DNA from: Blastocladiella emersonii ATCC 22665
Lineage: Eukaryota > Fungi > Blastocladiomycota
Reading direction: 5' to 3'
Length of the DNA: 64,000 nt
Assembly: GCA_025594325.1 (NCBI GenBank)
Contig: JANHCV010000014.1
Span: 1,116,001-1,180,000 of the forward strand
In this document: positions 23,268-64,000 of the stretch, piece by piece
How positions within the stretch are numbered: the stretch's first letter is position 1
Layout of the letters: every line of letters starts with the position of its first letter
Notes under the pieces: model-generated
Told to the model about the DNA's origin: nothing
Seen by the model: only the letters and a program-made list of their open reading frames with translations
The model's database searches: none
Program-made: the position numbers and the translations under genes

Positions 23268-26200
23268 ATGAATTCACTTGATGCATCGCGTTTCTATCAA
23301 TCACGGCGGCGATATGCGACCGCCGTCGCGGCAGCCGCTCTCTTCGCGCTCTTCCTCGTGGGAACGACCCCGTCGGCCAGCGCGTCGATCGCCCCATGCC
23401 GCACGGGCACTACTTCCGCTTCCACGTTGGCTTCGGCGAGCGGTTGGGCCGTCAATCTGCCGACGTGTCCGTCATGCCCCGCAGGAGCGGCGGTCACCCC
23501 TGAAGGATGTCAGTGCCAAGCCGGCTCAATCCTTCGCTCTGGCTCGTGTGCCTCGTGTGGAGCAAACCAGATGGCTGTGACCGCAACAAACGAGTGCATT
23601 GCTTGTCCTGCTGGATCGACCTACAACGTGACGTCGGCCGCGTGCACCTGTCCCGCCTCACAGTACCTCTGTAGGTACCGTTCACAGTTGCGCCTCCCTC
23701 GTAGCTGTGAGTTGAACTAACAACCTCCGAACAGCACTCTCGCTCTCATCTGCGAATGGATCTACTACGGCCGAATGCAGGCCATGCCCATCCAACAGCT
23801 ATCCCTCCGTGACCCAGCTTGCATGCGTCGCCTGCCCCGATCCTCTCATGACCGCTGCGCCCTCGACAAACGGGCATTCGTGCACCTGCCCTACGGGTTA
23901 CATTGCGAGCGACGGGGGCGATGCACCTGTTTGCATGCCCTCAACATTTGTCGCGTCCATGGAGTCGGCCTACGCCAACTTCAATCTGCTGCCCGTCAAC
24001 GTCACGACGAACGCCGGGGGCATTGTCGCGCAGTCGTCGGCATCGAGCTACCTCAAATCACAGTTCTTGCCAGCGCTCTACCAGTGCGCCACCACCCCAT
24101 CTACCTCGACGACCACGGCCACGATATCGCCTGCTGCATGCCAACGACTTGCAAACTTGTGCGCTCTCGTGTACGGCGACCCGCGTCACCCCATTTGTGC
24201 CGCGTACTCGGCCAATAGCGCGCCAACCGTGCCGAGTGCCATGTTGCCCGTGTCCGAGGACGATGCCATGACGCTCTCATCGTCGGCAAGCACTCTCAAC
24301 GTAACCGTAGTACGGTACTCGGCGACGACCGGACTCGTGGAGCAAGCCGAGGACTGGGCCTCCTGGATCCAACGGCTTTGCAGCCCTTCGACACTGCCCA
24401 ACTCTGTCTCGAGCACTCCAAGTTTGGGCGATTCCAACGTCACAATTCCCGCTCTTGGTCGCGGCACCTCGCTGACCTGTGTCATCGATCCGGCAGCGTG
24501 GCGCGACGCGACCTTCGAAGTTTACATTGCGGATGCTGCACCCCGGTGGTCGCCTATCCCCGTCATCGTGGCCCGGGGCCAGCGTGTCCGCCGATTCTTT
24601 GTCTACGACGACCGCGTGCTGGGCCGCTCCTCTGGGAACGGCGGTGTCCGCTGGCTCACTTCTGCGACGCTGACCACGGCCATGGCCGGATCCGACACCC
24701 AATATCCCATTCTCAAGCTGACACACGCCGAGTCGCTGACCCCGCTTGCCGTCTCGCCGCCAACGGCCACAGTCACGGTGCGCTTCATCATGTCGACGGC
24801 GCGGTTCTGGTCAGCCGTCGGTATCGTGGCACCCATCACAGCTTGCGTCATTGTTGCGACATGGCTTGCGGGGGCAACGGCACGCGCTCAGCGCAACCGG
24901 CGCCAAGATCTTGTGACGGACGCGTGGTCGCTGGTCCTCCTCGTCGACGCGCTCGCCGCAGTCGTGGCGCCCGTCGTTACTGCGGCAGCGCTGTGCGTGG
25001 CCATTTACGTTTATGTCTTTTACACGTTCCAGGCGACGCGGCGGTTCATGTGGCTGCCCGGATCGGCCGACGAGGGCGCGTTCTTCGGCGCGCTCGTGGC
25101 GGCCGCCGTCGTGCAGACCTTCCACGTCGCCGTCACCACGCTCCGACAGTGTCAAACGCGTGTCTACGTCGTCGACTGGGAGAAGCCACGGATCAGCGCC
25201 GACGGCATGAACGCGGGTGCTCTTGCGGTCCCAGGCACGGTAAGCGCTTGGCGAAGCGTTCACGTCGCCCGCAAGCTGGTCGAGGTCGCCACTTACCGCC
25301 GCATTCATCTCGGACTCACGGCCCTGGCGGTCGCCGTCCTCGTCCCTGCGGATCCCAACTGGTTTGTCGCCGTCGCGCAGCAGTCGCTCGCGTTTCTTGG
25401 GCTTGCCGCGGCGCAGTTCCTCGTGGTCACTCTCGCAATTGAGCGGTTTGCAAGCAACCCGCCCATGGACTTTGTCGACCTGCTGACCGTCGCCAACCTG
25501 TCGCTCATTCTGCTCGACGGCGACGACCCGCGCGGCTTCTACCTCCACGGCCGATCCGTGTTTCCCGAGGCCGACACGGACATGGCGTCGCTCGTGGGCA
25601 ACCTCAGGCGCGAGGCATCGGACGTCGTCGGCCGCCGCGGGCTGACGGCAGGCGGCGACGTTGTGTTCGAAGTGATTGCCTCACCGAGTCTACACCGTGC
25701 GATTGACGCCATCGAGCATGTCTCTGGGTCAGGCGATGATGCTGCTGAACCGCTTCTATCATCGACACGCGGTACCGTTGCTCCTCGCCGCCCGTCGTCG
25801 TGGGGTCAAGGTGGTGGTGGGGCGACCAAGTGGATTACGGCGCCGTTCACGGACCGGCTCGGGGTAGTGTCGACCGCACCCGTGTCGAGCCGCCGGCACA
25901 AGACGCTTAACGTATTCTTCACCCGTTTCCTCGACCAGGTACGTTACACCTTGATTCTCGTGACGCAAGCCGCCCGCTGACCTGGAGCACGAGTAGAACC
26001 TCAAGGAACAGCGGTACCGCGTCATCCAGCGGACGTGGTCCGACCGATGGCTCGGATCGTACCCGCAGACCGAGTCCAACGTCTCGCTCTTCTGCCGCGG
26101 TGCGTTCGGACGCGCCTCCCATCGCGAACCCCGCCTCACTCACTGGATGCGTGGGAACGCGTCTGTTTAGAGGATACCGCCGTCTTCCTAGAAACCATGT

Positions 26201-26433
26201 GGGCGGGCATGGAGCTGCGCGTCATGCTCCTCGTTCTGCTCACGTTCAACCTCGCGACCATGGCCGCGGCACCCTCATCCTCTTCGTCCAGCGCCGCGAC
26301 GACTGCGGGTTCCCGCATCGTGCCTGCCGTGGCCGCGTACCTGGTCCAGGCTGTTTTGAGATGGGCCCGCGGGCACTTTGGCCGGCGGGCGTTATCGCAC
26401 TTCACAGGCCTCGACCAGCGGCTCGTCGAGTGA
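23268..26433 (+). CDS. TMEM67: Meckelin (ciliary transition-zone protein), copy 1
   Basis: Signal peptide and Cys-rich ectodomain, then CQTRVYVVDWEKPR, VSAWRSVHVARKL, DFVDLLTVANLS, GFYLHGRSVFPEADTDM and C-terminal LSHFTGLDQRLVE, matching the meckelin consensus. Introns near 23673-23733 and ~25940-26000. Confidence 0.85.
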
Positions 26434-26648
26434 GAGTGGGCGAGCACGCGGAGACAGGGTGGGTGGTGGCGCAGCAGCGCTGGGAGATCACGTCACTTTG
26501 AGCGCGGGTGGCGCGAGGCGCGTCGCCCACGCGGCTTCGCCCTTCACTTCACAAGCTTCCTACTGACGGTCCTCTCTTCTCCCACGAATGAAACTCCATG
26601 CATTTGACACTGTAACTTGAATAAGACGTCCTCACACTGCAAACTATT

Positions 26649-27780
26649 ATGTGCCGCTGGATCTGCTTCAAGTCAAAGACGCCCGTCCTGCTCGCGGACC
26701 TCCTCACGCGTCCGCAGCACTCGATCATCAACCAGTCCTTTGACTGCCGCCTGCGCCTCGACGAGGTGCGCCCGCTCAACGGCGACGGCTTCGGCGTGGG
26801 CTGGTACGGCGGCTACGGCGACGCGGCCGCCGCGGGCAGCGAGGGCGAGGAGTCGTCGCACCCCGAACCGCCGTGTGTGTTCACGTCCACCCTCCCCGCA
26901 TGGAGCAACTTAAAGTGCGCTCTTTTCTCTTCAAAACTCGCTCGTTTCGTGCATAGCGCTGACATGTGCGTGTAGCCTGACGCGGATAAGCAACCACGTC
27001 CGCTCTGGCCTCGTCTTCTGCCACGTGCGCGCGGCCTCGGCCGGCTTCCAAATCTCGGAGACGAACTGCCACCCTTTTTCGTTTGGCAGCCTGTTGTTCC
27101 AGCACAACGGCTACATGGCCCACTTTGCCAAGATCAAACGCGCTTTGCAGGCGCGGATCCCCGACGACTTGTTCAACACGGTCCACGGGAACACGGACTC
27201 GGAGTGGGCGTTTGCGCTGTTCCTGTCGCTGCTGCGCGACCCGGCACGGGCGCGGTTCAGCCCGTACGAGCTCAAGGACGCGCTGCTCAAGACGATCGCC
27301 ACCATCAACGAGCTTTCGGTCGCCGCGGGCGTCGCCAGCACGCCGTCGCTGCTCAACTTTGCCGTGACCGACGGGCAGTCGATCCTGTGCACGCGCTACA
27401 CGAACACGTCGGCGCGCGAGGCCGCGTCGCTGTACTGGTCGAGCGGGTCCGAGTTTACGACTGACGCCGACGGCGACTACCACATGCGCAAGGCGGGCAA
27501 GCGCGAGGATATTGTCGTCATCTCGAGCGGTACGTTCATTGTTCCTCGACCGAGTCCCGCGGACTGCGCTGACTCGCTCTCCCACGCGCGAACAGAACCG
27601 CTCACCTTCAACCGCGCCGACTGGTGCAAGATTCCCGACAATACGCTACTCATGGTGACCCCGAAGACCAATGTCCTGCTCTTCCCGATTGAGGACGAAC
27701 ATTGGGACCCCACCGCCGAGCGCGCTCCCGAGGTGCCGTGGTGGACTGTCGCGGGTCGGATCCGGAGCGGGACGGAGTAG
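26649..27780 (+). CDS. DUG3: Class II glutamine amidotransferase (Dug3-type), copy 1
   Basis: N-terminal MCRW, LLADLLTRPQHSIINQSFDCRLRLD, NGDGFGVGWY, HVRAAS, ETNCHPF, GNTDSEWAFALF, SLLNFAVTDG. Introns ~26915-26975 and ~27530-27592. Confidence 0.93.
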
Positions 27781-28879
27781 CTCACGAGATGATCAAGAAT
27801 ATATGAGCAGTGCCATTGGTCTGCTGGACCCGACTGGATCTGCTCGATCGAGGTGGGCTTGGCGGTGGCCGCTGGTGCGAGGGACTGCAGCTGCTGCATT
27901 TTCTGCTGCTGACTCTGCTGAAGCACGGCTTCGAGGAGGGCGTTGAAAGGTTTGAGAGCGAGGCGCGGGTCCAACGCAAGCGCCGAGTCGACAATGTCGC
28001 AGTCCGCGGGATGCGGGACCCATGACCGAGGCGAGGGCGACGCATCCGAGCTGATCCCGGTGTGTAGCAGCGAGGTCGGCGAGCGGCTTGGGACCCCGCC
28101 ACCGTGGCGATCATGGCGGCAATCGACCAAGACCGGCTATCGTCGCCGTCGCCACGCGCGAACGAGCCAGAGTCTGGCGCGAACCCGTGGAAGACGTAAG
28201 CCCTTTTCGAATTTGTTGTTCGTCGCCTAATTTTATGGATTGAAATAGGAGAATATAATCCTAACTAGGATTCCACTATGATGAATCCCGCGAGGGAGTG
28301 GCGGTGATGAACAAAGTCTCGCGACGCGTCTCGCATCTCCCACGTGCCTGGTCACGCAATTTCGCGACGCGTCTTTCCTCTGCTCCTATCTGTCTCCCGT
28401 GGTCGTTTACAAAGCGCGATTTCGCGAAATCTGTAAGAAAAAGACAAAAGAATGAAGACACAAATCCCAAAAGAATAAGTGAGCGCTCACTGCGTCAAGG
28501 TGGAAGGAGGGTTCGCGAGGGCGGAGGGGTACCAGCCAGAGCTCGGAGATAATGACAAGATATGAATTGGACCGATTGTAGTCGATCTGTCCCCAGGGGA
28601 TCCCTCAGCCGTGTCGCGTTTGCACACCCGTCCTTGCCGCTCCGCTCGCGCTCACGCGAGGGTTAGAAACAAACTCAGGCAAAGAGCACCCCTGACCCGC
28701 TGTCTAGAGATTCTCAGTCTATGCTAATATAAAGAATAACCTGGTCTTAGGGCTCAGCCTGGCCTGACCTGGCCCGTCCTGCGCGCCTGTGCGAGTGGGG
28801 GATCCTGGGTTTTCTTGCCGCTACGCCGCCGGATCCATGTCGGACGAGCCGCACACCTCAGGTCCAAACAGCTTGAGTT

Positions 28880-29405
28880 ATCCATCTCATCGTTGGAGCG
28901 CAAGCACCGCAATGCGCTCGTCGTCGAACCCGGCGTGGCCATCGGCACGCTGTCGATCGGCAAGCCGGGTACCCAAATGTCGCTGTAGACGTTATGCTCC
29001 ACTGAGGTCACGCCCATGAGTATGACGCTCGGCGTGCTGATCCTCAACGGGCTGATCAATGCAAACAAGGGCATCATCTTCATCCCGCCCGTGGTCATGG
29101 TCCAGCACTGGAACCCCGACCTCAAGCTCGCGGAGGGCGTCGTCAAGGGCCAGATCAAGACGTCGCACCTCAGCAACTTGACGTGTCTCTCCCATCGTGC
29201 GGACCAATCCTTTGATAGAGCCGCCGTAGCTGTGCCTCGAGCTCGACGTCGACGTTGAAGTCGAGGTCATCAAGAAGCTGCTGCGCTGGCTGTACGAGGT
29301 GATGGTCACCGGCACCCTGCTTGCGGTCGAGGCCGATCAGGTCACGGCCCTGCCACACGACAACTGCCTGTACGTGTACACGAGGCGATGGGGCAACAGA
29401 TACTG
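28880..29405 (+). pseudogene. Possible degraded BTB-like coding relic (mirror copy ~58450-58975, minus strand)
   Basis: Broken frames include ELDVDVEVEVIKKLLRWLYEVMVTG, which resembles the BTB 'D..F..LL.FLYTG' motif. No continuous frame. Confidence 0.3.
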
Positions 29406-30905
29406 AGGAGAGAGACACGTTGTAACAAGAACATATCGCTGTGACGGATTGGCGATTGTATACATCTGCAAAAACACTCTTAGTGCATCGCCGCGCCTCA
29501 TGGTGATCGAGCCGACGAACGACCGACGACAACGGCGAAGAGAAAATGCCCGAAGCGCCGCGTGGCCATGAAGATGGCGGCGTGGTGGCTTGGCCGGGTT
29601 TAGTACGACAAGATGTCGTCGCGCTGAACTGGCGGCACTCGTGGTGGAACTTGTCGAGCCTGCCACATGCCCAGCTTGCGGAACTCGGGGATCGAGGTAG
29701 AACAACACGCGCAGCGGGCAAGTACCTTGGAGTCGTTGCGGCCCGCGGCCACGGTCGGACCCGACTTGTACTGTACGACTCGGACTTGACGCCGCCGTGC
29801 ACGACGTGAAGAACCATGAGGACAGTTGGTCGGACGCATGGTTGTTGGTCAGCGAGTCGGACACGTGGGACATGGCCGCGGCCGTGGGCCAAGGACCACG
29901 GCCGAGGCGATCGTCCACACGTGCGGCTCGACCACGTTCCCGGTTACTTGCTTGGCTGCGATGAACGGGCACTGAATGAGGAGAGTTGAAATAATCTATA
30001 CAAACGGGAGCGCGTGGGCGCGTGTCAGCAATTCTGATCGTCGGCGACACGGCAGTCACGACGACGACGGCGCGCTTGCGCTCAGACCGCTCTCGCGACG
30101 CATCCTTATTGAGCCCGCCGAGCCGATTGAGTCGATTGGCCGCCTCAGCATGCCGAGCGTGAGCGAGAGCAAGAGGGCGACGGCGACGGAATCCCCAAGC
30201 AATGGAACATCGGGTGCTCGATCCAGGAGGCCGCTCGGTCCGCTACCGGCACACACGCCGTGCGCGCGTGCGCGCCGCAATCCAACACACGCGACGAGGA
30301 AACTTACATAACCGCTCAGCCAACCACTGCTATCGTAGCCTCGTATCCCTTCATCGAGGCCGCATCGAGAGCGTGTCGAGAGTGCGACGAGAGTTTCGAG
30401 AGCGTGTCGAGCGAGAGCAGCGCGTTGGGTCTCGGTCGAAGGGCGGTAGGCACGCGGTGGCGAGCGTGTTCGGTTTTCAGGTATGGCTCTGCATAGATTT
30501 GATGCTGTCGAGAAAAGAACTGCATTGCATAGAGTGGGGGTGTTGCGGTGCAGTGTGCGTGGACAGCGGTGCCGGGTGCTCGGGGAGTGAGGGCGGGGGC
30601 GGGAGCGGCCTCGAGCGGGAGGCTGTCCGCACACAGTACGCGCCTCGAAGCGCGTCGCGTTTCAGCCGCACGTGGCGCCGGAAGGGGGTCGCGCTGGGGT
30701 CGCGCGCCGGCGCGTCTCGGCCTCGACTTGTCCTTCCTCCCTCCCCTGCTGGTGCTCTCAATCGGTCCTGTCAAGTTCTGCGACTTGCCGCAATTCATGT
30801 ATCACGGCCGGACTGGTCCGACTTGACCTTCGGCGACCCCCAATGAAATGACCGGCGGCCGCGGCCGCGCCCGCCTTCCCGTCGCTCGCTCGTCCCCTGC
30901 CTCTC

Positions 30906-32883
30906 TTGTGTTGCCCGGACGAACTCAACTGTGATAATGCGGGCCAAAACCTGATCTCGAGCCCCGACCGCATCGGCACTGTGGCGGGAGCCGCCGTGCA
31001 CATCCCCTTCACCGCGGTCGTCGCCTACACGTGCCATACCACTTCGTCGTACCGCACTCCTTTGAGCTTCGCGACGTTTGTTCCGCGCGCAAAACTCGCC
31101 GCTGCGTACCTCGCCGATGCCAACGCAACGGTCCTTGCCAGCGGGCAGCGCGACAACCAGGTCCTCCCATTCGACACGCTTTAGTACAACTTTGGTCCGT
31201 CTTTGCTCCTGCCGCTGCCGAGATTTCCCACCAACCTCTCTCACCTCTCTCTTAGACCCGAGAACATGGACCACCGTCCCAGCGACTTTGCCCGGCCCGT
31301 TGGACCGCTACTCGCACGGCCTCGTCGCCTTCAACTCGACAATATACCTGTACGGCGGGATCGGCAACCAGGGTGCGACCACGGACCTGTGGCAACTCTC
31401 GTCGGGTTCGGATTCCGGTTCGCTGCAGTGGTCGCGCATCACGCCGCGGCCGGGACCTTCCGGCACCGTGGCCGTGACGCCGCCGCCCCTGTACTGGCCG
31501 ACGGTGGTCGCGGCCGACGATCTCGGCAAGATCATTGTCATTGGCGGGCTCACGCTGCAGTCGGGCTACTACTCTTACTCGCGGCTCATGTTCGAGTTTG
31601 ACACGCGTATGGCCTTTCGTCCTTCCAATGCTCTGTTTAATGATGCCGTACCCTCACACAATAAGCACGCTCGTGTGGTCTCAGCGCAACAGCAGCTCGC
31701 AACCGACCATCTCGACGTCGGCCGCGGTCGCCGCCTCGGCTGTCTCGCGGCCCGCGTCACGGATCATCCACGGCTTCACTGAGTACGCCGTGCAGAGCTA
31801 CCATGTCCCGACCGACACGTGGTTCTTTGATCCCATCGACAGCCTGACCTCGCCCCTCGACTCGGCCACCGTCATCGACCCGCGCCTGTACCGGTCCGCG
31901 ATGCTGTTTGGCAACAACTGCGCGGTGCTCTTCGGCGGGCAGATCAAGTCCGTGACGCCGTCCTCGACGGTCCGCACGTGCTACACGGACGTGCTGCACA
32001 TCGTAGACCTTGACTGCTGGGCCATGGTCCACGCGACGTCGCTACCCGGACGGCACCGCATGGGCCACGCCGCGGTACGGCGCGGCGACGTCGAGCTGGT
32101 GATCGCCGGCGGGTTCAACGGCGTGTCGCAGTCGGACGTGGCTCGCGCGCGCATCGCACTGCCGGCGGCCAACGCGACAGCACGGGCGGCGCGCTGCGCC
32201 CGGACGTGGTGCGCGCGGTCTAACGACTGCGCCGACTGCGGGGCCAAGCCCGGGTGCGGGTGGTGCGGCGACGCGTGCGTGTACGGGTGCTCGGCCGTCA
32301 CCTCGATAGCGTCGTGCCCAGCGCGCGTCCCGCTGACGCTCGGCGCGCCCAAGACGGGCCGGACCGCGGGTCTGGCGGTCATCGAGTTCGACGCCTTCAT
32401 CAACGCGCCCGACAACGTCCTGTTCATCCGGTACGACAGCGACGACGTGGGCAGCGGCGACCCGCCGTTCACGGGCACCATGCGTAACTTGTCGCTCAAC
32501 GCCACGTTCATCACGCAGTCGACGGCGACCGTGTCCCCAAGCACCCACCGACGCGCGCCGGTTCGGCGGGTGGCACGTCTTCCGACTCCAGTACTCGCTG
32601 CTAGTGTCGGCCGAGGGCTTCTCGTACTGCAACCCGATCGATTGCACTCACGCGGACGCGCAGACGGTGCCATAGAGTAGCGTCTCTCTACAATACGTCT
32701 CTCACGAGGTATTGCGTAGCTCCTCGGCGTCGGGATCATCTGCCTCATGGTGTCGGGCACGCTGGCGATGCGTCGTCTCGCGCGGCGACACCCGGCAAAC
32801 GCCAACGTCGGCGCGCTGCCCAAGTTCCGGCCGTCCATCGACCAAGTCGACGCCAAGGTGCTGACCGACTGCGCCGTGCCGTG
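30906..32883 (+). pseudogene. Attractin/MEGF8-like Kelch-PSI-TM gene, 5'-truncated and frameshifted (copy 1)
   Basis: Kelch repeats (RYSHGLVAFNSTIYLYGG, RMGHAAV...LVIAGGFNG), PSI motif CADCGAKPGCGWCGDAC and a TM segment. Apparent frameshift near 32540 and no clear start codon. Confidence 0.6.
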
Positions 32884-33102
32884 ACGATCGCGGAGGCGCC
32901 CAAGCCGGTGGCCACGTCCGCGAGCAGCGCGATGTCGTAGACGCGGTCGCTGCTCTAGAGCGAGATCAAGACGTTGGTGTCGCCTTCACTCGCGGACTGC
33001 GGCGGCTCGACCTGACCTCGCTATGACCAGCAGCTCTACTGTTTGTAAAGAGTGAATATATAGCCACCATTTCACACACCACGAACACCAGGCCGATGTC
33101 GG

Positions 33103-35067: not shown

Positions 35068-36599
35068 GGTGCGGATCGCAAGGTTTGGTCTGTTTTGAGG
35101 ATGGGAAGCCGTTGCGGCGAGAGCGAGAGCGATCAAGCGGGGTCGCGCGGGAGGGCGGGGGGAGCGGGAGCACCGCGCCAGGGCGCGAGCCGGTGCCGAG
35201 CGGGCCTCTGCACCAAGTACTGTAATCAAGGATCAAGGAGGCGGGAGACGATATCGCGGCCAGGAGGAGCGAAAACGCGTGCAAAACGCGTCTCGCACCG
35301 CGTGCTGGAAACGTCTCGCACTCGGCGCCTTGCGGCAGCCGTGTCACGCGAGCGACGATCGCGCGTCGCGCCCGCTCCGGTCACCGAGGCGGGACTACAT
35401 ACGAAGCGAGGAGCCGCAAACTCCTGGACGCATGAGCCGTTGTGGTGTGGTCGAGGAAGTCAGTCGCGAAGAGGTACCAAGTCCGGGGCGTGAGCGGGCG
35501 GCCGACTCGGGTGGCACCTCGACACGCGAGTTGGTTCGCCTTCGTCGGCTCGGGCCCCAATAAGGACTCCCGCTCTTGGACGTCACAACCAGGCGACTCT
35601 CAATCGCCACGGCAAGTCCTTGCAATACGTGTCCAAGGGGCTGTCGCCTGAGAGGCCGGAGACCAGAGCTTGAGCAACGTCGGTCGGTCCGCATGTTGGA
35701 CATGCTGACCTCGCCGACCCGCACGATCGAGGCTCGGACGCGCCGCGGAGATGTGCAGAGTATGGCGCTGTAGTGTCGTAGAGGCAAGGTCCTCGCCTTC
35801 GTCCAAGCGGCCGGGAAGCACGCTGTTCTGGCCGATGGACCGTCGCCCTACTGCTCGATCTCGCTGCTGCCCCTCGATCTCCGCCCCAACTACTCACGGT
35901 CAGTGTCCCTCCATCCGGTGCTTCAGCTCCCATGGCTGCGTGGCGGCAACTGACACGATGGAAGCGGTGGTGGAGGGGAGGGAGCACGGCGGGGGGCGAT
36001 CCGAGACGGCGACGCGTCGGGTCGCTCGACGACGCGAGGGGGCCTCTCCGGGTCGGCGGCACGGAGCCAGGCCAGGTTGTTTCGCGAGTTCGCGGCACCG
36101 ATTCCCGTTCTGCCGAAGCCTAAAGATGTTGCGCGGGGTGCGGGCCCGCGTGGACCGCCGCGGGACAAGGAGCAACGTCAGCGACGCGACGCGCCGCGCC
36201 ACCGAGTCACGCGTGTCATATTTGAGCGGGTATCAGGTGACACCGCCGCGGGTCGCTGCTCTGATCCGCCGGCTCGCCGCTGAGGAGCTCCGTACCTGCA
36301 CAAGCTCTCGTCGCTCGCCGCAGAGTCTCCTGGCGAGGGCGACTTGACCCGGGACCAACGACCCCCGGGCTGCTCTCCGCCGGGGTTGGCCGGGTTCAAG
36401 GCGGTCTCCACAGTGAGGGTCATCGGCACGCGCCATCAAGGATCGGGCGAGTCGTCACGGTCAAAGTTTTGCGCAGAGTCGAGGGCGGAGGTTGGTCCGG
36501 CGCGACGCCCGGCACGGCACTGGCGGCGAAGCTTGCGCCTTGGCGCCCGCTCGCGGCCGACGACATCGCTCTCTCCCTTTAACCGCCGACGCCCGTATC

Positions 36600-37115: not shown

Positions 37116-37233
37116 ACCCGCTCAATGGATTCTTCCGCCCAGTCGATGATTGACTAGTGGACAGATACGATGAGAATGACAAAACTACGACTAGCTACAA
37201 CTTCTCGTCCCGCCAACAGCCTCGTGGCGGCGC

Positions 37234-53857: not shown

Positions 53858-54099
53858 TCACCTGCCGACTACGCAGCTCTGCGGTTTCCCATCGTTTTTT
53901 TCTTCATTCGCTTGGTTTCGCCATGTCTTCTTTGCATTCGAGATGCGTGCCGTTCGTTGCAGGGCGTGTCGATTTTGCTCATCCCTGTTTCTCCCCCTGT
54001 CTTTCATCTCCAACGTCAGGAATGAGCAATTCTTTCCGTTTTAAAACTCGCGTCCACACTATTTTTCATGGAGAGGTCGCGTCGAGAACGACGCGTCGC

Positions 54100-54547
54100 G
54101 ATATCATGTGACCGCGAGACACCAGATTCTGGCTACTCAGTCTTGCTGTTGCGCTCGACCCCGCCGGGTGTGCCGGGGCTCACCGTTGACCCCCGGCTTG
54201 AACGTATTGCACTGGTCATGGGCCGTGGCGTACACGGCGCCGCCAGCGAAACCGCGACGGACGCTGAGTGCATCGGCCCCGCGGCGAACGCTGTGCTGCG
54301 CAACCTCGGGTTCGCGGTCCGCGGGATGCCGCCCGCCGACGCGGTGGGGGCGGGTGGCGTGCTGAGCACCGGCGAGGTGCTCGTGGATGCCGCCGATCGC
54401 ACGCTGGCGCCCGGACCGGGAGCAACGGGAGGCGGGGGTGACGGTGGCAGGGGACCTGCGACGGCGGCGTCGGCCGCGGTAAATGTGTGTAGATTAGAGC
54501 GGACGATGGCGCTCGCGGTGGTCGTTCTCCTCGCGGTTTCGGTTTGA
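54100..54547 (+). pseudogene. C-terminal fragment of metalloprotease paralogue B
   Basis: HWSWAVAYTAPP and ATDAECIGPAANAVLRNLGFAVRGMPP are diverged from 48020-48290; the sequence is then identical to the paralogue B 3' end. No catalytic HExxH. Confidence 0.8.
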
Positions 54548-54883
54548 ATAAATCATCCATTCCATGTGTGTATACTTTCAGCTCGCGCCGGCGTCGTACA
54601 CGCGTGCTCCTTGGCGACGGCCGCCACGACGCGCGGCGGCACCGCAAGCGCGGCGGCCGTGAACTTGCGTAAGAACCCGGCCCCCGTCGCACCACCGCTG
54701 CTTCCCAACGTCACGGCGAGAAACTCGCGGACGACGAACGTCGAAACGAAGTGGGTCAGCGTACCGTGGGCGGCGCGGCGCAGACAGCCTGGCGGCATCT
54801 GAACTTGGCCTTTGCGTCGTACAGCATCTCGAAGATGGCGGCGTAGCCTTCAAGTAAACTTACTCCCTTGGTGGCGATTTGGG
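54303..54883. repeat. Direct repeat copy 2, containing the protease B 3' end and a third ORC4 remnant (54562-54860, minus)
   Basis: Matches 48231-48811 and ends 4 bp before the right arm of the inverted duplication. Confidence 0.92.
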
Positions 54884-54890
54884 TCTGGCT

Positions 54891-56950
54891 CTAGAGCAGC
54901 GACCGCGTCTCCGACATCGCGCTGCTCGCGGACGTGGCCACCGGCTTGGGCGCCTCCGCGATCGTCACGGCGCAGTCCGTCAGCACCATGATGTCGATCT
55001 GGTCAATGAACGGCCGGAACATGAGCTGCGCGCCGACTTTTCCGTTGGCCGGGTGCCGCGACGCAACCCGCCGGACTGCCAGCGTACCCAAAATCTTGAG
55101 GCAGAGGATACCCCCGCCCAAAAACTACGCGACGATGTAGCCAGTGTGAGAGATCGTAGGCGAAAGAGACATCGTCAAAAAACTGTCCCGTCCGCGCTTT
55201 CGATCCAGTGTAGTCGACCGAGTTGCAGTACGAGAAGCCCTCGGCCGACACTAGCAGCGAGTACTGGAGTCGGAAGACGTGCCACCCGCCGAACCGGCGC
55301 GCGTCGGTGGGTGCTTGGGGACACGGTCGCCGTCGACTGCGTGATGAACGTGGCGTTGAGCGACAAGTTACGCATGGTGCCCGTGAACGGCGGGTCGCCG
55401 CTGCTCACGTCGTCGCTGTCGTACCGGATGAACAGGACGTTGTCGGGCGCGTTGATGAAGGCGTCGAACTCGATGACCGCCAGACCCGCGGTCCGGCCCG
55501 TCTTGGGCGCGCCGAGCGTCAGCGGGACGCGCGCTGGGCACGACGCTATCGAGGTGACGGCCGAGCACCCGTACACGCACGCGTCGCCGCACCACCCGCA
55601 CCCGGGCTTGGCCCCGCAGTCGGCGCAGTCGTTAGACCGCGCGCACCACGTCCGGGCGCAGCGCGCCGCCCGTGCTGTCGCGTTGGCCGCCGGCAGTGCG
55701 ATGCGCGCGCGAGCCACGTCCGACTGCGACACGCCGTTGAACCCGCCGGCGATCACCAGCTCGACGTCGCCGCGCCGTACCGCGGCGTGGCCCATGCGGT
55801 GCCGTCCGGGTAGCGACGTCGCGTGGACCATGGCCCAGCAGTCAAGGTCTACGATGTGCAGCACGTCCGTGTAGCACGTGCGGACCGTCGAGGACGGCGT
55901 CACGGACTTGATCTGCCCGCCGAAGAGCACCGCGTAGTTGTTGCCAAACAGCATCGCGGACCGGTACAGGCGCGGGTCGATGACGGTGGCCGAGTCGAGG
56001 GGCGAGGTCAGGCTGTCGATGGGATCAAAGAACCACGTGTCGGTCGGGACATGGTAGCTCTGCACGGCGTACTCAGTGAAGCCGTGGATGATCCGTGACG
56101 CGGGCCGCGAGACAGCCGAGGCGGCGACCGCGGCCGACGTCGAGATGGTCGGTTGCGAGCTGCTGTTGCGCTGAGACCACACGAGCGTGCTTATTGTGTG
56201 AGGGTACGGCATCATTAAACAGAGCATTGGAAGGACGAAAGGCCATACGCGTGTCAAACTCGAACATGAGCCGCGAGTAAGAGTAGTAGCCCGACTGCAG
56301 CGTGAGCCCGCCAATGACAATGATCTTGCCGAGATCGTCGGCCGCGACCACCGTCGGCCAGTACAGGGGCGGCGGCGTCACGGCCACGGTGCCGGAAGGT
56401 CCCGGCCGCGGCGTGATGCGCGACCACTGCAGCGAACCGGAATCCGAACCCGACGAGAGTTGCCACAGGTCCGTGGTCGCACCCTGGTTGCCGATCCCGC
56501 CGTACAGGTATATTGTCGAGTTGAAGGCGACGAGGCCGTGCGAGTAGCGGTCCAACGGGCCGGGCAAAGTCGCTGGGACGGTGGTCCATGTTCTCGGGTC
56601 TAAGAGAGAGAGGTGAGAGAGGTTGGTGGGAAATCTCGGCGCGGCAGGAGCAAAGACGGACCAAAGTTGTACTAAAGCGTGTCGAATGGGAGGACCTGGT
56701 TGTCGCGCTGCCCGCTGGCAAGGACCGTTGCGTTGGCATCGGCGAGGTACGCAGCGGCGAGTTTTGCGCGCGGAACAAACGTCGCGAAGCTCAAAGGAGT
56801 GCGGTACGACGAAGTGGTATGGCACGTGTAGGCGACGACCGCGGTGAAGGGGATGTGCACGGCGGCTCCCGCCACAGTGCCGATGCGGTCGGGGCTCGAG
56901 ATCAGGTTTTGGCCCGCATTATCACAGTTGAGTTCGTCCGGGCAACACAA
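54891..56950 (-). pseudogene. Attractin/MEGF8-like Kelch-PSI-TM gene (copy 2)
   Basis: Mirror of 30906-32883. The tail reads LMFRPFIDQ...EAPKPVA and shares the frameshift seen in copy 1. Confidence 0.6.
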
Positions 56951-59900
56951 GAGAGGCAGGGGACGAGCGAGCGACGGGAAGGCGGGCGCGGCCGCGGCCG
57001 CCGGTCATTTCATTGGGGGTCGCCGAAGGTCAAGTCGGACCAGTCCGGCCGTGATACATGAATTGCGGCAAGTCGCAGAACTTGACAGGACCGATTGAGA
57101 GCACCAGCAGGGGAGGGAGGAAGGACAAGTCGAGGCCGAGACGCGCCGGCGCGCGACCCCAGCGCGACCCCCTTCCGGCGCCACGTGCGGCTGAAACGCG
57201 ACGCGCTTCGAGGCGCGTACTGTGTGCGGACAGCCTCCCGCTCGAGGCCGCTCCCGCCCCCGCCCTCACTCCCCGAGCACCCGGCACCGCTGTCCACGCA
57301 CACTGCACCGCAACACCCCCACTCTATGCAATGCAGTTCTTTTCTCGACAGCATCAAATCTATGCAGAGCCATACCTGAAAACCGAACACGCTCGCCACC
57401 GCGTGCCTACCGCCCTTCGACCGAGACCCAACGCGCTGCTCTCGCTCGACACGCTCTCGAAACTCTCGTCGCACTCTCGACACGCTCTCGATGCGGCCTC
57501 GATGAAGGGATACGAGGCTACGATAGCAGTGGTTGGCTGAGCGGTTATGTAAGTTTCCTCGTCGCGTGTGTTGGATTGCGGCGCGCACGCGCGCACGGCG
57601 TGTGTGCCGGTAGCGGACCGAGCGGCCTCCTGGATCGAGCACCCGATGTTCCATTGCTCGGGGATTCCGTCGCCGTCGCCCTCTTGCTCTCGCTCACGCT
57701 CGGCATGCTGAGGCGGCCAATCGACTCAATCGGCTCGGCGGGCTCAATAAGGATGCGTCGCGAGAGCGGTCTGAGCGCAAGCGCGCCGTCGTCGTCGTGA
57801 ATGCCGTGTCGCCGACGATCAGAATTGCTGACACGCGCCCACGCGCTCCCGTTTGAATAGATTATTTCAACTCTCCTCATTCAGTGCCCGTTCATCGCAG
57901 CCAAGCAAGTAACCGGGAACGTGGTCGAGCCGCACGTGTGGACGATCGCCTCGGCCGTGGTCCTTGGCCCACGGCCGCGGCCATGTCCCACGTGTCCGAC
58001 TCGCTGACCAACAACCATGCGTCCGACCAACTGTCCTCATGGTTCTTCACGTCGTGCACGGCGGCGTCAAGTCCGAGTCGTACAGTACAAGTCGGGTCCG
58101 ACCGTGGCCGCGGGCCGCAACGACTCCAAGGTACTTGCCCGCTGCGCGTGCTGTTCTACCTCGATCCCCGAGTTCCGCAAGCTGGGCATGTGGCAGGCTC
58201 GACAAGTTCCACCACGAGTGCCGCCAGTTCAGCGCGACGACATCTTGTCGTACTAAACCCGGCCAAGCCACCACGCCGCCATCTTCATGGCCACGCGGCG
58301 CTTCGGGCATTTTCTCTTCGCCGTTGTCGTCGGTCGTTCGTCGGCTCGATCACCATGAGGCGCGGCGATGCACTAAGAGTGTTTTTGCAGATGTATACAA
58401 TCGCCAATCCGTCACAGCGATATGTTCTTGTTACAACGTGTCTCTCTCCTCAGTATCTGTTGCCCCATCGCCTCGTGTACACGTACAGGCAGTTGTCGTG
58501 TGGCAGGGCCGTGACCTGATCGGCCTCGACCGCAAGCAGGGTGCCGGTGACCATCACCTCGTACAGCCAGCGCAGCAGCTTCTTGATGACCTCGACTTCA
58601 ACGTCGACGTCGAGCTCGAGGCACAGCTACGGCGGCTCTATCAAAGGATTGGTCCGCACGATGGGAGAGACACGTCAAGTTGCTGAGGTGCGACGTCTTG
58701 ATCTGGCCCTTGACGACGCCCTCCGCGAGCTTGAGGTCGGGGTTCCAGTGCTGGACCATGACCACGGGCGGGATGAAGATGATGCCCTTGTTTGCATTGA
58801 TCAGCCCGTTGAGGATCAGTACGCCGAGCGTCATACTCATGGGCGTGACCTCAGTGGAGCATAACGTCTACAGCGACATTTGGGTACCCGGCTTGCCGAT
58901 CGACAGCGTGCCGATGGCCACGCCGGGTTCGACGACGAGCGCATTGCGGTGCTTGCGCTCCAACGATGAGATGAATAACTCAAGCTGTTTGGACCTGAGG
59001 TGTGCGGCTCGTCCGACATGGATCCGGCGGCGTAGCGGCAAGAAAACCCAGGATCCCCCACTCGCACAGGCGCGCAGGACGGGCCAGGTCAGGCCAGGCT
59101 GAGCCCTAAGACCAGGTTATTCTTTATATTAGCATAGACTGAGAATCTCTAGACAGCGGGTCAGGGGTGCTCTTTGCCTGAGTTTGTTTCTAACCCTCGC
59201 GTGAGCGCGAGCGGAGCGGCAAGGACGGGTGTGCAAACGCGACACGGCTGAGGGATCCCCTGGGGACAGATCGACTACAATCGGTCCAATTCATATCTTG
59301 TCATTATCTCCGAGCTCTGGCTGGTACCCCTCCGCCCTCGCGAACCCTCCTTCCACCTTGACGCAGTGAGCGCTCACTTATTCTTTTGGGATTTGTGTCT
59401 TCATTCTTTTGTCCTTTTCTTACAGATTTCGCGAAATCGCGCTTTGTAAACGACCACGGGAGACAGATAGGAGCAGAGGAAAGACGCGTCGCGAAATTGC
59501 GTGACCAGGCACGTGGGAGATACGAGACGCGTCGCGAGACTTTGTTCATCACCGCCACTCCCTCGCGGGATTCATCATAGTGGAATCCTAGGTAGGATTA
59601 TATTCTCCTATTTCAATCCATAAAATTAGGCGACGAACAACAAATTCGAAAGGGTTTACGCCATCCACGGGTTCGCGCCAGACTCTGGCTCGTTCGCGCG
59701 TGGCGACGGCGACGATAGCCGGTCTTGGTCGATTGCCGCCATGATCGCCACGGTGGCGGGGTCCCAAGCCGCTCGCCGACCTCGCTGCTACACACCGGGA
59801 TCAGCTCGGATGCGTCGCCCTCGCCTCGGCCATGGGTCCCGCGTCCCGCGGACTGCGACATTGTCGACTCAGCGCTTGCGTTGGACCCGCGCCTCGCTCT

Positions 59901-60074
59901 CAAACCTTTCAACGCCCTCCTCGAAGCCGTGCTTCAGCAGAGTCAGCAGCAGAAAATGCAGCAGCTGCAGTCCCTCGCAGCAGCGGCCACCGCCAAGCCC
60001 ACCTCGATCGAGCAGATCCAGTCGGGTCCAGCAGACCAATGGCACTGCTCATATATTCTTGATCATCTCGTGAG

Positions 60075-61206
60075 CTACTCCGTCCCGCTCCGGATCCGAC
60101 CCGCGACAGTCCACCACGGCACCTCGGGAGCGCGCTCGGCGGTGGGGTCCCAATGTTCGTCCTCAATCGGGAAGAGCAGGACATTGGTCTTCGGGGTCAC
60201 CATGAGTAGCGTATTGTCGGGAATCTTGCACCAGTCGGCGCGGTTGAAGGTGAGCGGTTCTGTTCGCGCGTGGGAGAGCGAGTCAGCGCAGTCCGCGGGA
60301 CTCGGTCGAGGAACAATGAACGTACCGCTCGAGATGACGACAATATCCTCGCGCTTGCCCGCCTTGCGCATGTGGTAGTCGCCGTCGGCGTCAGTCGTAA
60401 ACTCGGACCCGCTCGACCAGTACAGCGACGCGGCCTCGCGCGCCGACGTGTTCGTGTAGCGCGTGCACAGGATCGACTGCCCGTCGGTCACGGCAAAGTT
60501 GAGCAGCGACGGCGTGCTGGCGACGCCCGCGGCGACCGAAAGCTCGTTGATGGTGGCGATCGTCTTGAGCAGCGCGTCCTTGAGCTCGTACGGGCTGAAC
60601 CGCGCCCGTGCCGGGTCGCGCAGCAGCGACAGGAACAGCGCAAACGCCCACTCCGAGTCCGTGTTCCCGTGGACCGTGTTGAACAAGTCGTCGGGGATCC
60701 GCGCCTGCAAAGCGCGTTTGATCTTGGCAAAGTGGGCCATGTAGCCGTTGTGCTGGAACAACAGGCTGCCAAACGAAAAAGGGTGGCAGTTCGTCTCCGA
60801 GATTTGGAAGCCGGCCGAGGCCGCGCGCACGTGGCAGAAGACGAGGCCAGAGCGGACGTGGTTGCTTATCCGCGTCAGGCTACACGCACATGTCAGCGCT
60901 ATGCACGAAACGAGCGAGTTTTGAAGAGAAAAGAGCGCACTTTAAGTTGCTCCATGCGGGGAGGGTGGACGTGAACACACACGGCGGTTCGGGGTGCGAC
61001 GACTCCTCGCCCTCGCTGCCCGCGGCGGCCGCGTCGCCGTAGCCGCCGTACCAGCCCACGCCGAAGCCGTCGCCGTTGAGCGGGCGCACCTCGTCGAGGC
61101 GCAGGCGGCAGTCAAAGGACTGGTTGATGATCGAGTGCTGCGGACGCGTGAGGAGGTCCGCGAGCAGGACGGGCGTCTTTGACTTGAAGCAGATCCAGCG
61201 GCACAT
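60075..61206 (-). CDS. DUG3: Class II glutamine amidotransferase (Dug3-type), copy 2
   Basis: Both exon translations are identical to copy 1. Confidence 0.92.
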
Positions 61207-61421
61207 AATAGTTTGCAGTGTGAGGACGTCTTATTCAAGTTACAGTATCAAATGCATGGAGTTTCATTCGTGGGAGGAGAGAGGACCGTCAGTAGGAAGC
61301 TTGTGAAGTGAAGGGCGAAGCCGCGTGGGCGACGCGCCTCGCGCCACCCGCGCTCAAAGTGACGTGATCTCCCAGCGCTGCTGCGCCACCACCCACCCCG
61401 TCTCCGCGTGCTCGCCCACTC

Positions 61422-64000
61422 TCACTCGACGAGCCGCTGGTCGAGGCCTGTGAAGTGCGATAACGCCCGCCGGCCAAAGTGCCCGCGGGCCCATCTCAAA
61501 ACAGCCTGGACCAGGTACGCGGCCACGGCAGGCACGATGCGGGAACCCGCAGTCGTCGCGGCGCTGGACGAAGAGGATGAGGGTGCCGCGGCCATGGTCG
61601 CGAGGTTGAACGTGAGCAGAACGAGGAGCATGACGCGCAGCTCCATGCCCGCCCACATGGTTTCTAGGAAGACGGCGGTATCCTCTAAACAGACGCGTTC
61701 CCACGCATCCAGTGAGTGAGGCGGGGTTCGCGATGGGAGGCGCGTCCGAACGCACCGCGGCAGAAGAGCGAGACGTTGGACTCGGTCTGCGGGTACGATC
61801 CGAGCCATCGGTCGGACCACGTCCGCTGGATGACGCGGTACCGCTGTTCCTTGAGGTTCTACTCGTGCTCCAGGTCAGCGGGCGGCTTGCGTCACGAGAA
61901 TCAAGGTGTAACGTACCTGGTCGAGGAAACGGGTGAAGAATACGTTAAGCGTCTTGTGCCGGCGGCTCGACACGGGTGCGGTCGACACTACCCCGAGCCG
62001 GTCCGTGAACGGCGCCGTAATCCACTTGGTCGCCCCACCACCACCTTGACCCCACGACGACGGGCGGCGAGGAGCAACGGTACCGCGTGTCGATGATAGA
62101 AGCGGTTCAGCAGCATCATCGCCTGACCCAGAGACATGCTCGATGGCGTCAATCGCACGGTGTAGACTCGGTGAGGCAATCACTTCGAACACAACGTCGC
62201 CGCCTGCCGTCAGCCCGCGGCGGCCGACGACGTCCGATGCCTCGCGCCTGAGGTTGCCCACGAGCGACGCCATGTCCGTGTCGGCCTCGGGAAACACGGA
62301 TCGGCCGTGGAGGTAGAAGCCGCGCGGGTCATCGCCGTCGAGCAGAATGAGCGACACGTTGGCGACGGTCAGCAGGTCGACAAAGTCCATGGGCGGGTTG
62401 CTTGCAAACCGCTCAATTGCGAGAGTGACCACGAGGAACTGCGCCGCGGCAAGCCCAAGAAACGCGAGCGACTGCTGCGCGACGGCGACGAACCAGTTGG
62501 GAGCCGCAGGGACGAGGACGGCGACCGCCAGGGCCGTGAGTCCGAGATGAATGCGGCGGTACGTGGCGACCTCGACCAGCTTGCGCGCAACGTGGACGCT
62601 TCGCCAAGCGCTTACCGTGCCTGGGACCGCAAGAGCACCCGCGTTCACGCTGCCGTCGGCGCTGATCCGTGGCTTCTCCCAGTCGACGACGTAGACACGC
62701 GTTTGACACTGTCGGAGCGTGGTGACGGCGACGTGGAAGGTCTGCACGACGGCGGCCGCCACGAGCGCGCCGAAGAACGCGCCCTCGTCGGCCGATCCGG
62801 GCAGCCACATGAACCGCCGCGTCGCCTGGAACGTGTAAAAGACATAAACGTAAATGGCCACGCACAGCGCTGCCGCAGTAACGACGGGCGCCACGACTGC
62901 GGCGAGCGCGTCGACGAGGAGGACCAGCGACCACGCGTCCGTCACAAGATCTTGGCGCCGGTTGCGCTGAGCGCGTGCCGTTGCCCCCGCAAGCCATGTC
63001 GCAACAATGACGCAAGCTGTGATGGGTGCCACGATACCGACGGCTGACCAGAACCGCGCCGTCGACATGATGAAGCGCACCGTGACTGTGGCCGTTGGCG
63101 GCGAGACGGCAAGCGGGGTCAGCGACTCGGCGTGTGTCAGCTTGAGAATGGGATATTGGGTGTCGGATCCGGCCATGGCCGTGGTCAGCGTCGCAGAAGT
63201 GAGCCAGCGGACACCGCCGTTCCCAGAGGAGCGGCCCAGCACGCGGTCGTCGTAGACAAAGAATCGGCGGACACGCTGGCCCCGGGCCACGATGACGGGG
63301 ATAGGCGACCACCGGGGTGCAGCATCCGCAATGTAAACTTCGAAGGTCGCGTCGCGCCACGCTGCCGGATCGATGACACAGGTCAGCGAGGTGCCGCGAC
63401 CAAGAGCGGGAATTGTGACGTTGGAATCGCCCAAACTTGGAGTGCTCGAGACAGAGTTGGGCAGTGTCGAAGGGCTGCAAAGCCGTTGGATCCAGGAGGC
63501 CCAGTCCTCGGCTTGCTCCACGAGTCCGGTCGTCGCCGAGTACCGTACTACGGTTACGTTGAGAGTGCTTGCCGACGATGAGAGCGTCATGGCATCGTCC
63601 TCGGACACGGGCAACATGGCACTCGGCACGGTTGGCGCGCTATTGGCCGAGTACGCGGCACAAATGGGGTGACGCGGGTCGCCGTACACGAGAGCGCACA
63701 AGTTTGCAAGTCGTTGGCATGCAGCAGGCGATATCGTGGCCGTGGTCATCGAGGTAGATGGGGTGGTGGCGCACTGGTAGAGCGCTGGCAAGAACTGTGA
63801 TTTGAGGTAGCTCGATGCCGACGACTGCGCGACAATGCCCCCGGCGTTCGTCGTGACGTTGACGGGCAGCAGATTGAAGTTGGCGTAGGCCGACTCCATG
63901 GACGCGACAAATGTTGAGGGCATGCAAACAGGTGCATCGCCCCCGTCGCTCGCAATGTAACCCGTAGGGCAGGTGCACGAATGCCCGTTTGTCGAGGGCG
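61422..64000 (-). CDS. TMEM67: Meckelin, copy 2 (5' end outside window)
   Basis: The 682-aa ORF 61875..63923 matches copy 1 except for T>M, M>SV, D>A and L>V. Confidence 0.85.

Follow-up and report, generated by a model that had tools for sequence, protein, structure and literature searches.

Inverted segmental duplications in the human genome flank recurrent, passive inversions that arise through non-allelic homologous recombination. Site-specific invertible segments, such as those of the bacterial Hin, Gin and Fim systems and of FLP/FRT on the yeast 2-micron plasmid, are bounded by short sites, have a dedicated recombinase encoded nearby and rewire a promoter or a gene. Palindromes of mammalian sex chromosomes (P1–P8 of the human Y chromosome and those of the primate and mouse X chromosomes) are kept by arm-to-arm gene conversion, according to three reports (PMC8600007, PMC8327919, bioRxiv 10.1101/800185). 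As described there, such palindromes have inverted arms of >10 kb that are >99% identical, a unique spacer and intact protein-coding genes, and their arm identity is well above what the age of the duplication permits. The locus described here, in the fungus Blastocladiella emersonii, shares these properties with arms of ∼10 kb. Unlike the sex-chromosome palindromes, it lies on a fungal chromosome without evidence of sex linkage, and in place of testis gene families it carries ciliary and housekeeping-like genes. A further difference is that its homogenised tract ends within a gene, whose two copies are left with unlike tails. To our knowledge, no sexual cycle has been described for B. emersonii.

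We analysed a stretch of 64,000 nucleotides (the window) together with the fetched rest of its 1.25-Mb contig, C6; positions above 64,000 continue the numbering of the window. Self-blastn bounded the repeat at 23160/23262-32965 versus 64697/64596-54884, and a repeat finder returned the inverted match as four collinear blocks of 99–100% identity (23858-32667 versus 55188-64000). The first-pass annotation had described an inverted duplication continuing past the window edge and had suggested extending the sequence to find its end. Both arms and the ∼21.9-kb spacer are now delimited, and the outer edge lies 596–697 bp beyond the window. The differences between the arms that had also been noticed, substitutions and a 3-bp indel at 25207, proved real in a global alignment. 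Over their whole 9.8 kb the arms are 98.0% identical. Both are on the same contig, 74 kb from its end, where a 2.57-kb satellite is found. The arm stretch occurs twice in the 32.65-Mb genome, the meckelin half having exactly two copies. Rfam and tRNA scans of the window gave no match.

Table. Features of the inverted repeat, its spacer and its left flank (positions in window numbering; + and -, strand)
Feature	Position	Strand	Size, identity and evidence
Left arm (A)	23160-32965	+	9,806 nt; self-blastn, global alignment, Pfam
Right arm (A'), part in the window	54884-64000	-	runs on to 64697; full length 9,814 nt
Spacer	32966-54883		21,918 nt; unique except for older paralogous modules
Core of left arm (probably homogenised)	23371-32633		partner 64487-55222; 99.6% identical over 9,268 columns; longest identical tract 1,266 nt
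Diverged outer margin	23160-23370		23160-23261 ∼61% identical; 23262-23370 (start of meckelin exon 1) 92.7%
Diverged inner island	32634-32873	+	partner 55221-54972; last intron and transmembrane/tail exon of the attractin-like gene
Inner terminal block	32874-32965	+	93.5% identical; homology ends at 32965/54884
Meckelin/TMEM67 gene, left	23268-26433	+	PF09773, 1.8e-52; 3' end as estimated in the first-pass annotation
Meckelin/TMEM67 gene, right	∼64590 down to ∼61425	-	PF09773, 5.7e-53
Class-II glutamine-amidotransferase-like gene, left	26625-27777	+	two open frames; PF13230, 3.9e-11; GC3 map
Class-II glutamine-amidotransferase-like gene, right	60078-61230	-	
Attractin/kelch-like gene, left	30852-32883	+	PF24981, 3.3e-17 and 1.1e-17 across the two copies
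Attractin/kelch-like gene, right	57004-54894	-	tail differs from left copy
Direct repeat X	48181-48811	+	3' end of ORF 46505-48472 and frameshifted C-terminal fragment of ORC4 (minus strand)
Direct repeat X'	54253-54883	+	631-bp direct repeat of X; abuts right arm
ORC4 C-terminal frame	21098-21763	+	PF14629, 2.6e-18; tblastn, blastn
Kelch-gene fragments, left outer flank	21964-22664	+	collinear, in inverted orientation, with 67375-65725 outside the right arm; 77–79% identity

Identical Pfam families were found at equal strength in the left and right arms. On either side the meckelin, glutamine-amidotransferase-like and attractin-like genes retain intact open frames, with equal ORF lengths, the main meckelin ORFs being 754 and 755 codons. 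The left arm also holds a 2.8-kb stretch without a family match.

Identity is not uniform along the arms. From 23262 to 32633, 45 of the 9,377 aligned columns differ, 38 of them by substitution (26 transitions), and the differences within the core are clustered (index of dispersion 3.0–3.6, P<1e-4). High identity begins within ∼6 nt of the meckelin start codon. The weaker homology upstream is real, since a local alignment of 23160-23229 scored 50 compared with a shuffle mean of 20.8 ± 2.5; a search of the genome found no third copy of this margin. At the other end, the last intron of the attractin-like gene (32634-32719) is 42% identical between the arms and its tail exon (32720-32873) about 75% (74.7–75.2%). 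The terminal block beyond is near-identical once past 5 nt (GCCGT) that are tandemly duplicated in the left copy and give it an earlier stop codon, and homology ends ∼10–85 nt past the stop codons of the two copies. These strongly diverged arm ends had escaped the first reading of the sequence, as had the direct repeat abutting the right arm and the older, decayed copies of the same modules outside both arms. When core sites were polarised with outgroups, nine derived states fell in the left arm and seven in the right. Derived states divided about evenly between the arms are what two real loci that have diverged since they were last homogenised would be expected to show. GC-biased conversion in the core was rejected, AT-to-GC changes not being in excess among the 16 polarised sites.

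The age of the duplication was judged from the final exon of the attractin-like gene, for which a paralogue on contig 2 (C2a) is available. The left copy is 89.5% identical to C2a, compared with 75.2% between left and right and 75.2% between right and C2a; 29 changes are specific to the right copy, seven to the left and seven to C2a. The left arm is thus nearer to C2a than to the right arm, which argues that the arms split before that paralogue arose. The right final exon has also fallen in GC from 0.686 to 0.614 and carries many amino-acid changes, so that in this comparison of three copies the long right branch could partly reflect fast, relaxed evolution rather than age. In the core, C2a is only 83–86% identical to the arms, compared with 99.6% between the arms themselves. 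Arms that split early and are nevertheless this alike argue for later homogenisation of the core through gene conversion. Two other origins of the right-hand island were rejected. Recent conversion from a third paralogue lacks a donor, as a genome-wide search matched only the left arm and C2a, at 71–77%, and RIP-like mutation does not fit 15 transitions against 14 transversions.

We therefore believe that the locus is probably an old inverted segmental duplication on a nuclear chromosome, a palindrome with a long spacer whose core has been homogenised by arm-to-arm conversion. Its core is inverted and at least 99% identical, its arms lie on one chromosome around a unique spacer, and arm identity exceeds what the age of the duplication allows, as in concerted evolution. 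Conversion between the arms of large inverted repeats had been cited as known behaviour in the first-pass annotation, and the patchy mosaic, the diverged margins and a final exon that contradicts the core bear this out. One copy overwriting the other during repair would keep the arms 99.6% alike, and conversion tracts would stop where homology breaks, in the upstream region and at the indel-bearing last intron. A crossover outcome of the same repair might flip the 21.9-kb spacer passively. The expected result is near-identical working pairs of the three genes, the members of the attractin-like pair being distinct only in their membrane-spanning segment and cytoplasmic tail. The genome paper states that 65-nt Illumina reads were used to polish the assembly, and such polishing could add or remove a few differences between near-identical copies.

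A second palindrome is present on contig 2 (C2:1531660-1539158/1602334-1594836), with arms of 7,499 nt that are 99.64% identical. Like the present locus it has near-identical (99.5–99.6%) inverted arms in the range of 7–10 kb, a long spacer, an attractin-like paralogue at the inner arm ends and an identity that declines toward the boundary. Unlike it, the contents of its arms are otherwise unrelated and its right arm is without the tail exon. The contig-2 paralogues extend beyond the inner edge of the left arm to 33004, and one is also collinear with 35092-36198. A match running across this edge means that the adjacency of left arm and spacer is older than the present identity of the arms. For this reason we rejected an inverted duplication of X' plus A' followed by inversion of 32966-48811. 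In the last intron of the attractin-like gene and the adjoining end of its penultimate exon, homology stops at three independent points within ∼100 nt, and this region might conceivably be a recurrent boundary or breakpoint.

The direct repeat in the spacer has a signature like that of the arms, an identical tract with a diverged edge: all 16 mismatches between X and X' fall in the first 112 nt of X', followed by 519 nt without a difference. X has four relatives, every one on this contig. In a comparison covering positions 1-90000, the ORC4 frame of the left flank was the only full-length ORC4 C-terminal reading frame, and its 3' end (21445-21761) is the source-like counterpart of the pieces present in X, X' and X'' (71263-71578). 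The repeats bound 5.4 kb of lower-GC sequence, and an LTR retrotransposon at 48181-54883 was considered and rejected. The ORFs inside gave no Pfam match and no reverse transcriptase, integrase or protease, and the interior has intact paralogues 17 kb away with 55–59% protein identity. Nor is this a composite bounded by LTRs or terminal inverted repeats, X and X' being gene fragments (an ORF 3' end plus ORC4). The earlier statement that transposase and terminal repeats are absent holds, the 631-bp repeat being a gene-fragment duplicate and not an LTR. The spacer genes proposed earlier (proteases, GSKIP-like, BTB, RhoGAP-like and GH16) found no Pfam support among the long ORFs even at E<=1, a test made on unspliced ORFs, whose frames may differ from the true exons; in the spacer Pfam matched only a C-terminal fragment of RNA-polymerase Rpb2 and a kelch fragment. 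The sequence beyond the two arms holds remnants of 71–82% identity (the ORC4 3' end and pieces of a kelch gene), inverted and in collinear order. The left-flank kelch fragments are 79% identical to the right-flank copy versus 80% to the spacer copy. Being no nearer to the opposite flank than to the spacer, they are suggestive, not proof, of an older and larger inverted duplication.

The sequence at the inner edge of the right arm lends itself to another reading, a young inverted duplication made by a single replication-based template-switching event that copied first X, in direct orientation, and then A, inverted, to the right-hand site. The diverged island and margins would then be later changes or the legacy of short paralogue fragments present beforehand. 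X' abuts A' with microhomology of a few nucleotides at most, and the 519 identical nucleotides of X' adjoin the near-identical inner block of A'. Judged by the contig-2 paralogues, the left-arm context is ancestral and the X'–A' junction derived, and the region is rich in other duplications. We nevertheless consider this reading unlikely. A final exon 25% diverged and a last intron 58% diverged beside a 99.6% identical core require an outside donor, and the genome contains none; the graded, significantly homologous outer margin is left unexplained, again without a third copy. Moreover, both arm ends would still need to have had old paralogues at the right-hand site beforehand, and a model with this premise comes down to the old duplication that we prefer. 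An assembly artefact, through a join of two haplotypes or a chimeric fold-back, with one copy present per haploid genome, is very improbable. The haplotype join had been offered earlier as the main alternative, and the genome paper does report that purge_dups and manual removal of duplicate contigs were needed to go from 247 to 21 contigs; a core divergence of 0.4–0.5% is also in the range that heterozygosity could give. However, all four arm junctions lie in distinct, non-allelic sequence, the outer flanks are alike only piecewise (71–82%) with kilobase-sized indels, the inner flanks are unrelated and the arm ends are 25–60% diverged. The structure is 74 kb inside a contig of more than a megabase and includes a 21.9-kb unique spacer, both arms carry derived states, and the longest identical tract is short beside HiFi reads averaging 10.5 kb at ∼190x (genome paper).

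The main proposal of the first-pass annotation was that the spacer is an invertible segment. In its strong form, a programmed flip-flop in which the orientation of the segment would set the expression of genes in the spacer or the arms, this has the geometry in its favour, long inverted repeats around a gene-bearing spacer that bracket a potentially flippable segment as in Hin/Gin/Fim and FLP/FRT. None of the short sites, the recombinase and the rewiring of those systems was found here, and we regard such a switch as extremely unlikely. A six-frame search of the genome for two families, tyrosine (PF00589) and serine (PF00239) recombinases, found none while its controls were positive. Pfam scanning of ∼45 ORFs likewise found no family of recombinases or transposases. 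Each arm is a 9.8-kb block of genes rather than a short defined site. Since whole genes with their own starts and stops occupy both arm ends, a flip rewires no promoter or gene, and the similar palindrome on contig 2 has mostly unrelated contents. The proposal thus gained no direct support. Passive inversion by homologous recombination between 9.4 kb at 99.6% identity is possible, and mechanistically expected. In this respect the locus resembles the human inversion-flanking duplications, with long near-identical inverted repeats, a gene-bearing segment of tens of kilobases and one recombination route that gives conversion or inversion; in contrast to them, it is known in one assembled orientation.

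Taken singly, the structure read here as an old, conversion-kept duplication is of an ordinary, familiar kind. With the contig-2 palindrome, the locus extends a pattern, not mentioned in the genome paper, in which inverted duplications of an early-diverging fungus are maintained by conversion. It is conceivable, if rather doubtful, that B. emersonii holds a genome-wide set of long-lived, gene-bearing palindromes kept by conversion, an autosomal fungal counterpart of the sex-chromosome palindromes, in which this one would be older than that on contig 2. For annotation, both meckelin, both amidotransferase-like and both attractin-like genes should be taken as real paralogues and not as assembly redundancy. 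Because the pair predates a paralogue that is 14–17% diverged, the near-identity of duplicates in B. emersonii is not to be read as youth.

The large inverted duplication in this part of contig 6 (C6) is real. A repeat search of the window returned four collinear inverted blocks of 99-100% identity, and self-blastn on 158.9 kb of joined C6 sequence was used to bound the arms. With a word size of 28 the repeat runs over 23262-32965 against 64596-54884, and at higher sensitivity over 23160-32965 against 64697-54884 (positions above 64000 are window-equivalent, position n of piece L003 being 64000 + n). Arm lengths are 9,806 and 9,814 nt, with 21,918 nt between them. Inverted arms around a ~21.9-kb spacer, as proposed in the first-pass annotation, are thereby bounded as well as borne out, and the continuation it foresaw past the window edge was followed beyond 64000 to an outer end 596-697 bp further. 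Genome-wide DNA searches found the outer half-arm (23100-27815) in exactly these two places.

Features of the inverted duplication and its surroundings
Feature	Position	Strand	Match or identity
Window (contig 1,254,856 bp; genome 32.65 Mb, 21 contigs, introns present)	G000:C6:1116001-1180000		
Outer zone of arm	23160-23261		~61% identical
Next zone	23262-23370		92.7% identical
Core	23371-32633		99.6% identical, 9,268 columns
Island, part 1	32634-32719		42% identical, indels present
Island, part 2	32720-32873		74.7% identical
Inner terminal zone	32874-32965		identical once 5-nt indel passed
Meckelin/TMEM67	start codon 23268	+ (left)	PF09773, 1.8e-52 left, 5.7e-53 right
Class-II glutamine-amidotransferase-like gene		+ (left)	PF13230, 3.9e-11
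Attractin/kelch-like gene		+ (left)	PF24981, 3.3e-17 left, 1.1e-17 right
Ankyrin-repeat ORF	13408-14796		Pfam
Second kelch gene family	15233-16704; 22054-22589 (fragments only); 48977-50509; 65781-67201		
EF-hand + ZZ-finger ORF	16823-18100	-	Pfam
Actin-family gene	18553-20040	-	Pfam, 1.7e-108
ORC4 C-terminus ORF (sole ORC4 C-terminal reading frame of full length seen, window-equivalent 1-90000)	21098-21763		PF14629, 2.6e-18
RNA-polymerase Rpb2-type C-terminal fragment	ORF 37237-37788	-	PF04560, 2.4e-16
Frameshifted ORC4 C-terminus fragments	X 48499-48770; X' 54571-54842; X'' 71263-71578 (L003:7263-7578)		
Fic/DOC-domain ORF, beyond right arm	L003:8537-9607		Pfam
Homology end-points	contig-2 arm boundary ~32600; island start 32634; C6:1.003-Mb paralogue end 32697		

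Global alignment of the left and right arms resolved six zones (table). In the outermost, the local alignment of 23160-23229 scored 50, where shuffled sequence averaged 20.8 ± 2.5. The stretch from 23262 to 32633 differs between the arms by 38 substitutions, 26 of them transitions, and by four indel events that account for 7 gap columns; the arms are non-identical, as had been claimed, and the 3-bp indel previously placed at 25207 is present and in frame. The differences are clustered (index of dispersion 3.0-3.6, P<1e-4 versus uniform placement), and the longest tract identical between the arms is 1,266 nt.

The arm genes, assigned to families by Pfam, read on the plus strand in the left arm. 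Codon counts of the main ORFs, left versus right, are 754/755 for meckelin, 288/288 for the amidotransferase-like gene and 400/400 for the attractin-like gene, with a mixture of synonymous and non-synonymous differences. A meckelin gene is consistent with a flagellated fungus. Its start codon lies ~6 nt or less from the onset of high identity, and the arm homology stops ~10-85 nt past the stop codons of both attractin-like copies. About 2.8 kb at 28.0-30.8 kb gave no family match. A 611-nt piece within it, present in both arms (28127-28737; 59119-59728) and likewise without a family match, recurs at 93% identity on contig 11 (L016:3177-3783), with weaker matches nearby to contigs 15 and 21, and may be a dispersed repeat.

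Older relatives of the arms allow the duplication to be dated in relative terms. C6:1002767-1006896 matches the inner half-arm (27815-32697) at 82-86% identity, and two paralogues of the attractin-like gene on contig 2, C2a and C2b, match arm ~30650-33004 at 81-86%. The final exon of this gene, which codes for the membrane span and the cytoplasmic tail, has no more than three copies in the genome: left arm, right arm and C2a. Here the left arm shares 89.5% identity with C2a, and the right arm 75.2% with either of them; 29 changes are right-specific, 7 left-specific and 7 C2a-specific. Elsewhere in the gene the two arms share 99.6% identity, and C2a matches both of them at 83-86%. Since the final exon, unlike the rest of the gene, groups the left arm with C2a, the arms probably separated before the split between C2a and the left-arm lineage, and the core has probably been overwritten since. 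The genome holds no other candidate donor for the right-hand island (55221-54972), the partner of the diverged last intron and final exon in the left arm. RIP-like mutation of this island was ruled out by its substitution spectrum. When 16 core sites were polarised with the older paralogues as outgroups, 9 derived states fell on the left and 7 on the right, which is the split expected of two real loci diverging since their last homogenisation.

The tails of the two attractin-like copies differ in frame as well as in sequence. In the left arm a 5-nt tandem duplication, GCCGT (32874-32883), advances the stop codon and shortens the tail to 54 codons. The right tail (54972-54894) keeps the longer frame of 77 codons, as in C2a, and is strongly diverged, with many amino-acid changes including a lysine within the predicted membrane span. 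With a conversion boundary inside the gene, the attractin-like copies have a common body and two different tails.

The region as a whole is built of stacked older duplications. Old duplication units end at three frameshifted ORC4 fragments, which are 60-79% identical in protein to the ORF at 21098-21763. Beyond the right arm, 66252-71546 is a collinear, directly oriented counterpart of 49439-54843 (~71% identity), and 71579-65725 is a collinear, inverted counterpart of the left outer flank, 21445-22664 (77-82% identity). The near-identical arms thus sit within older, decayed paralogy. These surroundings agree with a larger, older inverted duplication, though not cleanly, as the left-flank kelch fragments are 80% identical to the spacer copy and 79% to the right-flank copy. 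The first-pass annotation had also placed a GH16/PI-PLC fusion in the spacer; the two long ORFs there (50796-53146) gave no Pfam match even at E<=1, and have intact paralogues 17 kb to the right (L003:3984-6141) at 55-59% protein identity.

On its inner side the right arm directly adjoins X' (54253-54883), which repeats X (48181-48811) in direct orientation; both stretches carry ORC4 pieces. The 16 mismatches between X and X' are confined to the first 112 nt, and the final 519 nt match throughout: a tract with a graded edge, the same signature as in the arms. Microhomology at the joint of X' with the right arm is a few nt at most. C2a runs on past the inner end of the left arm as far as 33004, and C2b is also collinear with spacer 35092-36198; this continuity makes the adjacency of left arm and spacer the older arrangement and the junction of X' with the right arm a derived one. 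Inversion of 32966-48811 after the duplication is ruled out by the same continuity. At the DNA level, spacer positions 36567-37848, which include the Rpb2-type fragment, share 89% identity with C2:1627258-1628617, so that there has been exchange or copying of pieces between contig 2 and the spacer.

A further large inverted duplication was found on contig 2 (C2:1531660-1539158 and 1602334-1594836; L019/L014 and L015/L025). Its 7,499-nt arms are 99.64% identical, with 27 mismatches and no gaps, around a 55.7-kb spacer. On the inner side both arms end within the attractin-like paralogue, at the equivalent of window ~32600, and the right-arm copy is without the tail exon. Three independent homology end-points fall within ~100 nt (window 32594-32697 and equivalents in L013, L014 and L015), where the penultimate exon gives way to the last intron; the cluster may reflect a recurrent breakpoint or a barrier to conversion.

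The joining of two haplotypes by the assembler had been named as the main alternative to a real structure. The assembly was made from PacBio HiFi reads (mean 10.5 kb, ~190x) with the La Jolla Assembler, followed by purge_dups; 65-nt reads were used for polishing with Pilon (PMC9730499). Such a join would need allelic flanks, but the two inner flanks have nothing in common, and the resemblance of the outer ones is limited to family-level pieces with kilobase-sized indels. Divergence at the arm margins is 25-60%, a further 74 kb separate the structure from the contig end, and copies with no identical tract longer than 1.27 kb are easily told apart by 10.5-kb HiFi reads. Only a small residual doubt attaches to a real duplication on this account.

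The other reading, of the spacer as an invertible segment, found no direct support, and nothing supports a programmed switch. Six-frame whole-genome searches, with positive controls, returned no tyrosine or serine recombinase families; none of ~45 scanned ORFs matched a recombinase or transposase, agreeing with the earlier remark that no transposase was visible; and a flip of the spacer would rewire no gene. The earlier interpretation is partly supported: arm-to-arm gene conversion stands, in the form of an overwritten core. Passive inversion of the spacer by crossover between the arms would still follow from homologous recombination between long inverted repeats.

The genome paper reports 21 contigs, 34.27 Mb and the telomere motif AAACCT, and makes no mention of inverted repeats or palindromes (PMC9730499); the sequence analysed here amounts to 32.65 Mb. 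Long AAACCT arrays stand at the very start of contigs 2 and 11. At its end (C6:1224350-1254856; window-equivalent 108350-138856; L008-L011) C6 carries a tandem array 30.5 kb long; its ~12 units, of 2.56-2.58 kb, are alike at 99% or more, and each has 5.4 copies of an AT-rich 138-bp sub-repeat. The array has no AAACCT telomere repeat and no Rfam match, its repeat is abundant in the genome, judging from genome-wide candidates too many to score, and it is possibly of satellite or centromere-like type.

Primate and mouse sex chromosomes carry large palindromes whose >99% identity is kept by arm-to-arm gene conversion (PMC8600007, PMC8327919, bioRxiv 10.1101/800185). The B. emersonii structure agrees with these in their testable features, as assessed within this one genome. 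It differs in its host, an early-diverging fungus, in its gene content and in a conversion boundary that falls inside a gene. The inverted duplication is thus a further example of a known structure, of modest importance alone.
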